Positions 6,958 through 12,985 of a stretch of DNA of 64,000 nucleotides are shown here, one piece after another. How positions within the stretch are numbered: the stretch's first letter is position 1; the number at the start of each line of letters is the position of its first letter. Location of the stretch: the IMG/VR virus record IMGVR_UViG_3300037087_000760, positions 1 to 64,000 of that record. The stretch is one strand, 5' to 3'. A model generated the notes under the pieces. That model searched no databases. It saw only the letters and a list, made by a program, of their open reading frames with translations, and was not told the origin of the DNA. The translations under genes and the position numbers were made by a program.

Positions 6958-7232
6958 TTTTCTTTTAATTGTTTTGTTAATTCCTTTCTTCTTTCAATTG
7001 CTTTCTCTTTATCTTCCCATTTTTCAATGAAAGTTTTTTTGAAATAGAATTTGTAATAAATAACATAAAATTTCCCTTCTTTTTCAATAACATATCTCCT
7101 TGTGGTAAATAAAGTCAACTCACTCATTAAGTAATTCCATTTTCCCTCGAAAGCAAAATGATATGTCTTTGTCCCGTATGATATATAGACAGAGAATTTA
7201 CTACCGTTTATATAAAATTTTTTAAAGTTCAT
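6954..7232 (-). CDS. Hypothetical protein
   Basis: Overlaps neighbours in operon-like packing. Confidence 0.55.
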
Positions 7233-9252
7233 TTTCTATTTTTTCATAATGAGAAAAAGTCAAATTGTTTATAGCTCTCCCCTGTGATAATGTTCTAAGT
7301 GTTGTTATAAAACCAAACTTCTCAGCCAAAGGTGATTGAACTTTGAGGATTATAGTCGAATCTGGTAATGTATTAATAGATACTATCGTAGAACGATGTT
7401 TATTAAGTTCACTAATTATATCACTCAAATATTCTTCTGGTGTCGTAATTTCTTCATCCATGATAGGTTCAAGTAAACACGGTTTACCTTTCATATAAGC
7501 CTTCGGAAACGAAATCTTCACACAAGTTTCAAAGGCGTATGGGCTTGAATCCACAACATGAGTAGAACCATCTATGATTGTTACTTTCAAACTTTCGATT
7601 TCGTTACCACCCAATGGACCACTAATCATACATTCTTTAAAAGCCTTTTCGATAGAAGTCATATATTCTCTTGGAATGTTTCCACCTTTAACCTCATTCA
7701 CAAAAATTAAACCCTTTGTATCATCGGATACAGGTTCTATTCTATACTCAATCTCAGCAAACATACCCTTTCCACCAGTTTGTCTTGATAATCTTTCTTT
7801 GTGTGTTACTGGTTGAGTTATTGTTTCTCTATAAGAAACTTTTGGTTGTCCTGTATTACATCCGACATTAAAATCAGTAATCAATCTACTTAAAATCACA
7901 TCCAAATATAATTCGCCCATACCACTAATAATGGTTTGTCCATTTTCATCTATCTTAACAGTAAATGTAGGATCTTCCTCAGTAAGTTTTTGAAGAGCAA
8001 ATCCTAATTTATCACTATCCTTATTTGTTAAGGGTTCAATGGTTATTGAAATAACTGGTTTTGGAACAATCATATTCTCAAAATGGAATGTATCTTTTGT
8101 TTCACAAAGAGTATCACCAGTTCGTAAATCTTTTATTCCAACAATACCACAAATATCACCAGCACCAACAGATTTTACTTCTATTTTCTTATTGGCTTGA
8201 ATGGTAAATAATCTTGAAATTCTTTCTGATTGTCCTGTTCTGGAATTATAAACAACTTGACCAAGTTTAAGCACACCAGAATAAACTCGAATCATAGATA
8301 ATTTTCCAGTATTTTTATCTGTCGAAATTTTAAAAACCAAAGCTGATAATTTTTCATCTTCACTTGGTCTAATTTCAACTTGTTCCGAATCTCTATTGGC
8401 ATAAATAATACCCCTATCAACTGGAGATGGTAAAAAATTCACCACAGCATCAAGTAATGTTTGTACTCCCTTATTTTTCTTAGCAGATCCACACAAAATA
8501 GGAACAATAGAAAAATCTAATGTTAAACTACGAAGATTTTTAATTATTTCTTCATTCGTTATCAATTCAGGTGTTTCCAAATACTTCTCAAAAAAGTCAT
8601 CGTTATGTTCCGAAATAGATTCAATCATTTTAATTCGGAATTTCAATGCCTGATCTAAGTATTCTTCAGGTATTACAGAAACACTATATTCCTGACCTAA
8701 TGTTTCGGAAGCCCATGTAATCAGTTTCATATCTATAAGGTCAATAACACCTTTGAAATTACTTTCACTTCCTACGGGAAGTTGAATCACAACTGGTTTC
8801 GATTTAAGTCTATCTTGAATTTGATGTACTACATTAAAGAAATCAGCTCCAATCCTATCCATCTTGTTTACAAAGGCTATTCTTGGTACTTTATATCTGT
8901 TGGCCTGTCTCCAAACTGTTTCGGATTGAGGTTGTACACCGCCGACTGCACAGAAAACAACAACGGCCCCATCTAATATTCGGAGTGAGCGTTCAACCTC
9001 AATCGTAAAATCAATGTGGCCGGGAGTATCTATAATATTTATCTTATGATCTTTCCAATACGATGTAACAGCAGCTGCCATAATCGTTATACCTCGTTCT
9101 TGTTCCTGAGGCATAAAATCGGTTACTGTATTACCATCGTGAACCTCTCCCATTTTATGATTCTCACCAGTATAATACAATATACGCTCAGTCAATGTGG
9201 TTTTTCCGGCATCGATATGGGCTACTATTCCTATATTTCTGTTAAGATTCAT
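7222..9252 (-). CDS. fusA: Elongation factor G
   Basis: [42 protein letters not shown]; 676 aa. Confidence 0.95.
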
Positions 9253-9593: not shown

Positions 9594-10214
9594 CTATTCC
9601 TTTTTCCATTTTACATTTAATGACTTATCGAATACTAACAAATATCTATGTTTACGACTTCGAGGTCTCCATTCACCCTCGACATCTTTCACTTTCCCCC
9701 TTGATTGCTTTATATATGTTCCATCTGGTTTTTTAATCCAGAAATCATTTTTGGGTTCTGTTAAACCATAATATTGAAAATTACATGCTTTATATATCGT
9801 ACCTAAATGAAAATCAGCATCAGCATAACTCAATATAACTCTAACTTTCGTATCTTTTCTCAATTGACGAATCGCCCTCGATACAAACCAACTGGTAATA
9901 TTATGTTCTACTTTTTGAATATCTGGATGAACACATAATCTACTCAACTCAAATAAACCCTCTTGATCATTTCTTTCCAATCCTAACATCCCCTTAGAAA
10001 GTTCTGGAACTGGAAAACCAGTGAAAATAATCACACCAACTAATTGTTCATTTTCAAACAGACCGTAATTAAAACCACTTTTAAATCCTCTGGAGATGTC
10101 TTTGAGATAATGAAATTTCAATAATAATTCACCAGCTTGTTCTTTGGTAATTCTACTCACATTGAAATTTTCTTTCATACCCTCATTTATAAACTCCAAA
10201 AATGTTTTTATCAT
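9594..10214 (-). CDS. mom: Mu Mom-like DNA adenine modification protein with CTS-like N-terminus
   Basis: FHYL, GLFENEQLVGVIIF, ELSRL, SWFVSRAIRQL, ILSYAD, HLGTIYKACNF; start MIKTFLEFINE just after late motif at 10220-10229. Confidence 0.8.
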   Translation of the reverse strand: MIKTFLEFINEGMKENFNVSRITKEQAGELLLKFHYLKDISRGFKSGFNYGLFENEQLVGVIIFTGFPVPELSKGMLGLERNDQEGLFELSRLCVHPDIQKVEHNITSWFVSRAIRQLRKDTKVRVILSYADADFHLGTIYKACNFQYYGLTEPKNDFWIKKPDGTYIKQSRGKVKDVEGEWRPRSRKHRYLLVFDKSLNVKWKKE

Positions 10215-10249
10215 GATTGTATATATTAATATACTCAATCATGAATTAG

Positions 10250-11077: not shown

Positions 11078-11130
11078 ATCCGTTTGACACATCCTTTGAC
11101 ATCACCCTCTCTCCGTTATATCAAACAGCG

Positions 11131-11202
11131 AGCGAGTAATCAGAATCGAACTGACATCATCGGTATGGTAAGCCGATACACTACACATTGTGCTATACTC
11201 GC
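11131..11202 (-). tRNA. tRNA-Gly(ACC), 31:39 mismatch
   Basis: TCGGC-TTACCAT-ACCGA, Gly-type acceptor, U73. Confidence 0.75.
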
Positions 11203-11277: not shown

Positions 11278-11360
11278 AGCGGGAGAAGGGATTCGAACCC
11301 TCACCTGAAGTTTGGAAGACTCCTATGCTAGCTTACGCGACCGTTAAACACCACTCCCGC
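11278..11360 (-). tRNA. tRNA-Gly(TCC) with D-loop insertion
   Basis: GGAGT-CTTCCAA-ACTTC; 19-nt D loop containing GC-GTAA-GC. Confidence 0.8.
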
Positions 11361-11371
11361 GAGTGATTTTG

Positions 11372-11442
11372 AGCAGATAATGAGAATCGAACTCACATCA
11401 AAAGATTGGAAATCTCTTACACTACCATTGTGCTATATCTGC
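11372..11442 (-). tRNA. tRNA-Gly(TCC)
   Basis: AGAGA-TTTCCAA-TCTTT, U73. Confidence 0.9.
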
Positions 11443-11554: not shown

Positions 11555-11629
11555 TGGAGCGGGATGCGGGATTTAAACCCGCGACCTGAAGTTTGGTAAA
11601 CTTCCGCTCTATCACTGAGCTAATCCCGC
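11555..11629 (-). tRNA. tRNA-Gly(ACC) with encoded CCA
   Basis: Perfect GAAGT-TTACCAA-ACTTC arm, U73-CCA. Confidence 0.9.
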
Positions 11630-11717
11630 GTGGGAGGCTATCTAAACTCTTTGACCCAATCAGATTTCTCCTGTCATGAGTTAACTTCGCCTTATTAGTT
11701 TTTCGAATGTTTTTTAG

Positions 11718-11789
11718 TAGCCCCGGCGGGAATCGAACCTGCATCCAGAAATTAGAAGTTTCTTGTTCTATCCATTGAACTACGGAGCC
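11718..11789 (-). tRNA. tRNA-Arg(TCT)
   Basis: AGAAA-CTTCTAA-TTTCT, canonical cloverleaf. Confidence 0.9.
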
Positions 11790-11838: not shown

Positions 11839-11916
11839 TAACCCTGAAGGGATTCGAACCCTCATTTTCATCCGTTATGCACAATCGAGTTTAGAAAACT
11901 CAGCCATTACAGGGCT
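11839..11916 (-). tRNA. D-armless tRNA-Arg(TCT)-like RNA with 22-nt variable region
   Basis: Acceptor AGCCCTG/CAGGGTT, TGAGT-TTTCTAA-ACTCG arm and T arm intact; only TAATGGC between acceptor and anticodon arm. Confidence 0.6.
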
Positions 11917-12029: not shown

Positions 12030-12124
12030 TGTACACCATACCCAACCCAGAGTCGAACTGGATTAGTTGGGGTCTCGAACCCCGCTTCACACAACCACCT
12101 ACTACCGTTCAGTATTATTCAACC
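12030..12124 (-). ncRNA. tRNA-derived element with two T-arm-like hairpins
   Basis: GGGG-TTCGAGA-CCCC and CCAG-TTCGACT-CTGG plus D-like TACT-GAACGGT-AGTA. Confidence 0.5.
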
Positions 12125-12128
12125 TTAG

Positions 12129-12198
12129 CAGTACAAGCAGGAATCGAACCTACATCCACCCTCTACTGAGGGTACTCTTTCCATTAAGCTACTGTACT
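12129..12198 (-). ncRNA. tRNA-like RNA lacking an anticodon loop (AGTA tetraloop)
   Basis: Acceptor, D and T arms canonical; CCCTC-AGTA-GAGGG in place of anticodon arm; G73. Confidence 0.75.
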
Positions 12199-12262: not shown

Positions 12263-12330
12263 GTACTCTAAAAGGATTCGAACCTATACTCCTCGCTTAC
12301 GCGAGTGTGCTACCATTACACCATAAAGTC
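12263..12330 (-). ncRNA. tRNA-like RNA lacking an anticodon loop (GTAA GNRA tetraloop)
   Basis: GTGT-AATGGTA-GCAC D arm, CTCGC-GTAA-GCGAG, TTCGAAT T loop. Confidence 0.7.
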
Positions 12331-12609: not shown

Positions 12610-12709
12610 CGGTAGGAGTTGGGATCGAACCAACATATAAAGCATTCATCCTATCAGACTACTTCTGATGTCCATCGGTGGCACCCTATGAACTTTATGC
12701 TATCCTACC
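12610..12709 (-). ncRNA. tRNA-like RNA with intact acceptor/T arm and expanded centre lacking a canonical anticodon arm
   Basis: GGTAGGA/TCCTACC-G, GTTGG-TTCGATC-CCAAC, internal ATCAGA-AGTAG-TCTGAT hairpin. Confidence 0.65.
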
Positions 12710-12854: not shown

Positions 12855-12985
12855 AGTCGGGAGCAGGAATCGAACCTACAGCTCTGGTTTAGGAGACCGA
12901 AGTAACTGTAACCATCGCCACTCTTTCACAAGAGGGAATATTTAGAACAGTGTTTTTAAGCGTGTTGCCATTACACTATCCCGAC
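12855..12985 (-). ncRNA. 131-nt tRNA body carrying an inserted anticodon-display module (Arg CCT loop)
   Basis: GTCGGGA/TCCCGAC acceptor, D and T arms canonical; insert has CTCTT-GTGA-AAGAG, GTTACTTC then GGT-CTCCTAA-ACC. Confidence 0.7.

Follow-up and report, generated by a model that had tools for sequence, protein, structure and literature searches.

A family of phage arginine tRNA genes with a predicted rebuilt D arm

Here we show that an unusual tRNA-like gene in a virus of bacteria, lacking a D hairpin and situated beside a canonical tRNA-Arg(UCU), is not a decaying copy but belongs to a widespread and previously unannotated family of phage-borne arginine tRNA genes. Comparative evidence indicates that the D arm in this family is replaced by pairing between a short connector and the long "variable" region, a predicted fold that lies outside the cloverleaf said to hold for all known bacterial tRNAs (PMC11551756). 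Our favored explanation, in which we have reasonable but not full confidence, is that the element encodes a functional AGA-decoding tRNA-Arg with an alternative core; this function is inferred from sequence comparisons rather than from measurements of expression, charging or three-dimensional shape.

The window analyzed here comprises 64,000 nucleotides, the first 64 kb of a 210,983-bp IMG/VR virus record (IMGVR_UViG_3300037087_000760; about 31% GC and about 71% complete) recovered from peat metagenomes. The whole record carries 67 ARAGORN tRNAs in five or six arrays. The array of interest is flanked by a phage-encoded EF-G with all five domains (window 7222-9252, minus strand), whose closest cellular relatives are Bacteroidota at about 55% identity, and by a Mom-family protein (9594-10238, minus strand). 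EF-G relatives of 72-83% identity sit on other huge-phage contigs, including the 735-kb phage LR756501. An earlier note had described the element as having intact acceptor, anticodon and T arms, a D arm reduced to a few nucleotides and a 22-nt variable region, and inspection of the sequence confirmed this description and its coordinates exactly. The features of the element, with helices in the connector and variable region as predicted from the family, are as follows:

11839-11916, minus strand: whole non-canonical tRNA-Arg(UCU) gene, 78 nt including the discriminator A at 11839
11910-11916, minus strand: acceptor stem, 5' strand (AGCCCUG), pairing 7/7 with 11840-11846, with one G·U
11903-11909, minus strand: connector UAAUGGC in place of the D arm; U8 and A9 form the outer helix, and U11, G12, G13 and C14 the inner helix
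11886-11902, minus strand: anticodon arm, with a 5-bp stem (UGAGU with ACUCG, 5/5 with one U·G) and loop UUUCUAA (U33, A37); the anticodon UCU is at 11893-11895
11878-11882, minus strand: 3' strand of the inner helix inside the "variable" region (G35, U36, bulged G37, C38, A39), pairing with connector positions 11-14
11871-11877, minus strand: D-loop-like bulge UAACGGA, with a G18/G19-like GG followed by an A20-like A
11869-11870, minus strand: 3' strand of the outer helix (U47, G48), pairing with A9 and U8
11864-11868, minus strand: AAAAU junction strand leading into the T stem, equivalent in position to a 5-nt variable loop
11847-11863, minus strand: canonical T arm (GAGGG-UUCGAAU-CCCUU)
11840-11846, minus strand: acceptor stem, 3' strand (CAGGGUU)
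11717-11789, minus strand: neighboring canonical tRNA-Arg(UCU), 49 nt downstream (ARAGORN and Rfam, 63.2 bits)

Standard gene finders do not recognize this element. ARAGORN made no call in standard, intron, low-threshold or mitochondrial modes, and the Rfam tRNA model (RF00005) gave no hit up to E = 10. The minimum free energy (MFE) fold is likewise unremarkable (z = -1.1). Several simple origins could nonetheless be set aside. A recent duplication of the canonical neighbor was rejected by inspection, as the two sequences share little beyond general tRNA features; an intron-containing or permuted canonical tRNA was rejected because no simple excision restores the cloverleaf order and the intron mode of ARAGORN finds nothing; and an attP-type tRNA fragment was rejected because both acceptor strands are present.

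To determine whether the element is unique, we scanned the whole record for paired acceptor stems and T arms, which revealed about twenty tRNA-like elements that ARAGORN misses. Three of these have the architecture of the candidate, with a 7-8-nt connector and a 24-25-nt "variable" region: Arg ACG (record coordinates 72864-72945, minus strand), Ile GAU (156660-156741, plus strand) and Ile UAU (157096-157175, plus strand). Each lies in the same tRNA cluster as a canonical gene of the same anticodon, 5 nt to about 240 nt away, and their variable regions share a D-loop-like motif, (G/A)UAAC(U)GG, and end in AAAU. The Ile(GAU) form has a homolog in one IMG/VR contig.

Having found paralogs within the record, we next asked how widely the design is distributed. 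An exact 28-mer of the candidate found nothing in IMG/VR; however, a pattern taken from the shared motif plus the T arm hit 40 IMG/VR contigs, 37 of which parse to one build with connector consensus UAGCCGAG, anticodon loop CUUCUAC/A and a 23-nt variable region. The candidate's own variant of the pattern hit 9 more contigs, all with Arg anticodons. Pooled, the motif scans of IMG/VR yielded at least 125 parsed elements in 123 viral contigs, corresponding to 82 distinct sequences with anticodons UCU (38), ACG (23), UCG (17), CCU (3) and GAU (1), such that 81 of the 82 carry Arg anticodons; 57 of the 82 have all stems perfect. Because the patterns fixed the bulge motif, NAAAU and part of the T stem, the invariance of those parts among hits is circular, as may be part of the Arg bias (through the required A after GG), and only the unconstrained parts (connector, stems, anticodon and inner helix) give independent evidence. 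The same kind of pattern applied to one genome for each of 185,579 prokaryote species gave only 5 true hits, all on MAG contigs with phage-like arrays, indicating that the family is essentially viral. A blastn search with the type-B element (one of two alignment types described below) found no match in GenBank phages.

Membership of the candidate in this family was assessed with covariance models. A model built from type-B sequences only, without the candidate (R1), scores the candidate at 44.6 bits (E about 1e-9) and the three paralogs at 33-76 bits, whereas every canonical tRNA of the three records searched scores at most about 37 bits, and all but one 33 bits or less. A second model that includes the candidate (R2) separates the two groups even more cleanly (46-85 bits against 32 or less), with the candidate at 85.2 bits. 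The same DNA, with no differences, is moreover found in contigs of several peat-metagenome runs. Together with the homologs in more than 120 contigs and in cultured phages, these results refute the idea that the element is a chance resemblance or an assembly artifact, despite its modest fold z-score and the silence of the standard tools.

We then examined alignments of the family for evidence of a common fold. In a 21-sequence type-B alignment, connector positions 10 and 11 pair with variable-region positions 48 and 47, with pair types GC16/AU4/CG1 and CG15/AU3/UA2/UG1 and no unpaired cell, and positions 12 and 13 pair with 38 and 37, with one CG↔GC swap. Overall, 99.4% of cells are paired, against 72% in shuffles and about 45% when the partner is slid, and RNAalifold finds the outer helix (4 bp in type B) unaided. 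In the type-A alignment, which includes the candidate, pairs 11-39 are CG5/UA4 and pairs 12-38 are GC7/CG1/UA1, and the outer-helix strand is invariant; all seven acceptor pairs and all five anticodon-stem pairs covary in the family. The candidate's own sub-family of 17 sequences, with connector UAAUGGC or similar, supports a 4-bp inner helix with a bulged G: connector position 4 with -1 is UA in 17/17, position 5 with -2 is GC14/AU2/CG1, position 6 with -4 is GC5/GU11, and position 7 with -5 is CG12/AU1. The candidate's connector is identical to that of 13 of the other 16 members of this sub-family (12 from IMG/VR plus LR756501).

These compensatory changes indicate that the connector is the 5' strand of a helix whose 3' strand is split by a 7-8-nt bulge, UAAC(U)GGA, with the anticodon arm nested inside. 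In this proposed fold the RNA is a three-way junction of acceptor, T arm and an extended anticodon helix of about 11-13 layers, rather than a four-way cloverleaf. The D arm is not simply lost; its loop motif and a D-like stem are rebuilt around the anticodon arm. The bulge resembles a D loop, in that it retains a GG like G18 and G19, which in canonical tRNAs ordinarily dock on the T loop, and a following A like A20, ordinarily the major ArgRS identity element. The same AAC(U)GG motif forms the D loops of canonical tRNAs in this genome, although in the Ile(GAU) variant the A after GG is U. For the candidate, six pairs are possible (U8·G48, A9-U47, U11-A39, G12-C38, G13·U36 and C14-G35), but nearest-neighbor energies do not favor them (-9.3 kcal/mol for the proposed fold, against -16.6 with three arms only and -19.1 for the MFE fold), and only 36 of 82 members recover three or more such pairs by MFE folding. 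For this copy the fold therefore rests on homology and covariation, not on thermodynamics. The geometry is also a concern, as the anticodon helix attaches at the acceptor/T junction rather than at the elbow, so that the anticodon-to-CCA distance may differ from that of a canonical L shape.

Canonical bacterial and phage tRNA-Arg shares with the element the 7/5 acceptor/T-arm configuration, the 5-bp anticodon stem, a loop of the form C/U-U-NCN-A-A/C with Arg anticodons, a GG-A motif like G18, G19 and A20, and a position inside phage tRNA arrays; here, however, only 7 nt lie where a D hairpin (3-4-bp stem and 7-11-nt loop) should be, and the order of elements becomes D-like stem 5' strand, anticodon arm, D-loop-like motif, D-like stem 3' strand. 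ARAGORN does not call the element as a tRNA-Arg, and two IMG/VR family members were called only as "tRNA-???". Metazoan mitochondrial D-armless tRNAs (mt-tRNA-Ser(AGY/GCU) and nematode mt-tRNA-Ser) likewise have no D hairpin and use a 4-8-nt connector to join the acceptor stem to an extended anticodon helix, giving three helices and an expected Y-like or boomerang-like shape (PMC7609411, PMC11551756). The present element differs from these in residing in a phage of bacteria, in its fully canonical T arm (GGUUCGAAUCC), in its Arg rather than Ser identity, and in having a region of 20-25 nt, rather than 3-5 nt, after the anticodon arm that carries the D-loop-like bulge and pairs with the connector; no co-evolved translation machinery is evident, in that no ArgRS was found in the three phage records searched. 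Class II tRNAs (Leu, Ser, Tyr, Sec) and allo-tRNAs also have a long stretch (over 20 nt) between the anticodon and T stems, and are, like this element, non-standard tRNAs found by metagenome mining (PMC5389517), but they keep a D hairpin and a variable region that folds on itself, and the acceptor/T configuration here is 7/5 rather than 8/4 or 9/3. A 3-bp variable hairpin does appear in the candidate's MFE fold, but is absent from the RNAalifold consensus of the family. Finally, the synthetic D-armless "mini HisT" shows that a bacterial aaRS (E. coli HisRS), EF-Tu and the ribosome can use a tRNA without a D hairpin, without adaptation (Edelmann et al., NAR 2024, PMC11551756); that molecule, however, is an artificial, plain deletion of bases 11-25, is unstable and needs a pnp mutation in the host, whereas the phage family is natural and conserved and keeps a D-loop-like motif and a compensating helix.

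To test conservation in relatives, we examined loci carrying related EF-G genes. A search for related loci with the neighboring EF-G found no relatives, and contigs carrying EF-G homologs of 78-82% identity did not contain the element, their arrays being different or absent, so that synteny-based conservation could be tested only in LR756501. This phage has an 85-88% identical ortholog at 363026-363102, again upstream of a canonical Arg(UCU). The element is the best-conserved stretch of the array between the two phages (85% over 93 nt), while the two canonical Arg(UCU) genes are only 57% identical. The connector, bulge and junction strand are identical to those of LR756501 and of IMG/VR members despite about 23% EF-G protein divergence between the two phages, and the difference between A1-U72 and G1-C72 is compensatory. 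The earlier note had stated that its reading would be refuted by an element unique to this genome with decaying stems (a pseudogene); with homologs in more than 120 viral contigs, an ortholog in LR756501 and copies in cultured Streptomyces phages, this is not the case.

A related possibility is that the family is functional but that this particular copy is a redundant paralog drifting towards a pseudogene and kept only by recency. The canonical Arg(UCU) 49 nt away makes this copy dispensable in principle, and a third, insert-bearing Arg(UCU) gene lies at 88936-89063 of the record. The LR756501 ortholog, moreover, has three mismatched stem pairs (acceptor 6-67 U·U, first anticodon-stem pair A·C and second T-stem pair U·C), which hints at relaxed selection where a canonical copy is present, and the connector-variable helices are weak by energy. 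The array also holds several other degenerate tRNA-like pieces. Elsewhere in the window are a 100-nt element with a perfect 7-bp acceptor stem and T arm but an unexplained interior and a stretch with two T-arm-like hairpins in a row (12610-12709 and 12038-12114, minus strand), as well as two tRNA-Gly genes with the unusual anticodon ACC and two tRNAs whose anticodon loops ARAGORN cannot read (11130-11202, 11555-11629, 12128-12198 and 12263-12330, all minus strand). However, all 17 pairs of the three standard stems are intact in the candidate, which together with its conservation makes this reading unlikely. Contigs of four peat runs show no variants in the element and so provide no population-level test.

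Evidence bearing on function comes from cultured phages. Fourteen records from 12 Streptomyces phages (Gilsonvirus and relatives, including Comrade and Gilson) carry the element with no annotation. In the complete genome of Comrade (NC_048728.1), the 34 annotated tRNAs include Arg gcg, tcg and cct, and three Thr, but no canonical Arg(UCU); the element at 72400-72473, 4 nt after the annotated tRNA-Arg(gcg), scores 69 bits with R2 and is the only UCU gene. AGA occurs there at 12 per 1000 codons and makes up 20% of Arg codons in the part of Comrade sampled, compared with 64% in the peat phage. In many IMG/VR arrays of about 20 tRNAs, the element similarly fills an otherwise empty Arg(UCU) slot, with no ARAGORN-called Arg(UCU), and often accompanies Ile(UAU), Leu(UAA) and Met genes; the tRNA-Ile(UAU) genes that regularly accompany it in small phage arrays are of unusual length (89-94 nt; IMG/VR loci L018-L052, for example L020:3334-3427). 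No ArgRS gene was found in the peat phage record (only about 71% complete), LR756501 or Comrade, so charging would be by the host enzyme. We infer that the element is transcribed within the minus-strand tRNA array, processed and given CCA, charged by the host ArgRS through the A20-like A, C35 and U36, and reads AGA, although no RNA run holds the sequence, the public runs that do being DNA.

An alternative, which we consider unlikely but cannot exclude, is that the RNA is made and folded as proposed but serves mainly as a decoy, sponge or nuclease-resistant stand-in directed at host or rival-phage systems that cleave or sequester tRNA (anticodon nucleases, PARIS, retron, Schlafen or OLD-type effectors), with the altered core changing recognition. 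Phage tRNAs that neutralize tRNA-targeting defenses are documented (for example PMC11464382 and PMC11555353), and the anticodon loop is kept perfectly tRNA-Arg-like, as a decoy would need. The genome also keeps "structural doublets" for many anticodons, a pattern that fits diversification of tRNA shape. Versions of Val, Thr, Glu, Lys, His, Asn and Met tRNAs of 83-92 nt with class-II-like variable hairpins lie beside versions of 72-77 nt, and tRNA-Leu genes of 73-75 nt without the long variable arm lie beside ones of 83-86 nt, next to a truncated class-I aaRS-like gene (record coordinates 70737-73298, 89071-91316, 156751-157505 and 169169-169990; aaRS-like ORF at 167377-168351). A tRNA-Gly(UCC)-like gene with a D arm followed by a roughly 13-nt insert before the anticodon stem (window 11278-11360, minus strand) sits directly beside the canonical Gly(UCC) at 11371-11442; the same build occurs in LR756501 (locus L062, 2840-2920) and at record coordinates 73226-73305 (Glu UUC), and may be a second non-canonical class. 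In addition, tRNA genes of 128-131 nt (window 12855-12985, minus strand; record coordinates 88936-89063, 89296-89422 and 89549-89677) have a canonical D arm and a conserved insert of about 55 nt before the anticodon stem, which may be an intron or an extra domain; their anticodons include Arg CCU and Arg UCU, ARAGORN calls only a truncated 68-nt piece, and there is no Rfam match. Against a decoy role, the element is the only UCU gene in Comrade and in many IMG/VR arrays although AGA codons are used, which argues for decoding, and the A20-like A and a full acceptor stem with discriminator are kept, features needed for charging rather than for a cleavage decoy. No defense or counter-defense gene is consistently adjacent, insofar as could be seen without a systematic examination. 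The earlier note had offered either a decoy or a functional non-canonical fold in which the variable region compensates, and the comparative data support the second.

It is also conceivable, though very unlikely, that the element is a tRNA-like processing signal (RNase P/RNase Z punctuation) or another cis element of the polycistronic tRNA transcript, with no role after cleavage. The acceptor-T minihelix is intact, which should be enough for RNase P, RNase Z and CCA addition, and the element lies between two tRNA genes with short spacers. A punctuation signal, however, does not need a conserved anticodon stem-loop restricted to Arg anticodons or a covarying connector-variable helix, and neighboring tRNAs provide their own processing sites.

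A 2024 study states that all known bacterial tRNAs are cloverleaf and L-shaped and that natural armless tRNAs exist only in mitochondria (PMC11551756), in agreement with the earlier note's statement that D-armless tRNAs are a mitochondrial feature; a 2020 review of non-canonical tRNAs mentions no phage case (PMC7609411), and we found no description of this fold in the literature searched, which did not extend to subscription-only papers. In the strongest reading, which we regard as about as likely as not, these are translationally active, naturally occurring non-cloverleaf tRNAs that work on ordinary bacterial ribosomes with the host ArgRS; they would then be the first natural tRNAs outside mitochondria without a D hairpin, with a rebuilt core maintained in phages as an adaptation, for example to escape host or rival tRNA-targeting nucleases or turnover, and a design that in this huge phage has been copied onto Ile anticodons. 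A conserved, covarying, Arg-specific tRNA family with a different junction topology, spread over more than 120 viral contigs and present in cultured Streptomyces phages, would overturn the 2024 statement for viruses of bacteria. It would also open a direct test of how much tRNA core geometry ArgRS, EF-Tu, RNase P, the CCA-adding enzyme and the ribosome really require, and give a natural scaffold for orthogonal or engineered tRNAs. Finally, it would show that standard annotation (tRNAscan-type models, ARAGORN) misses real phage tRNA genes, so that "missing" Arg(UCU) genes in phage arrays are explained.
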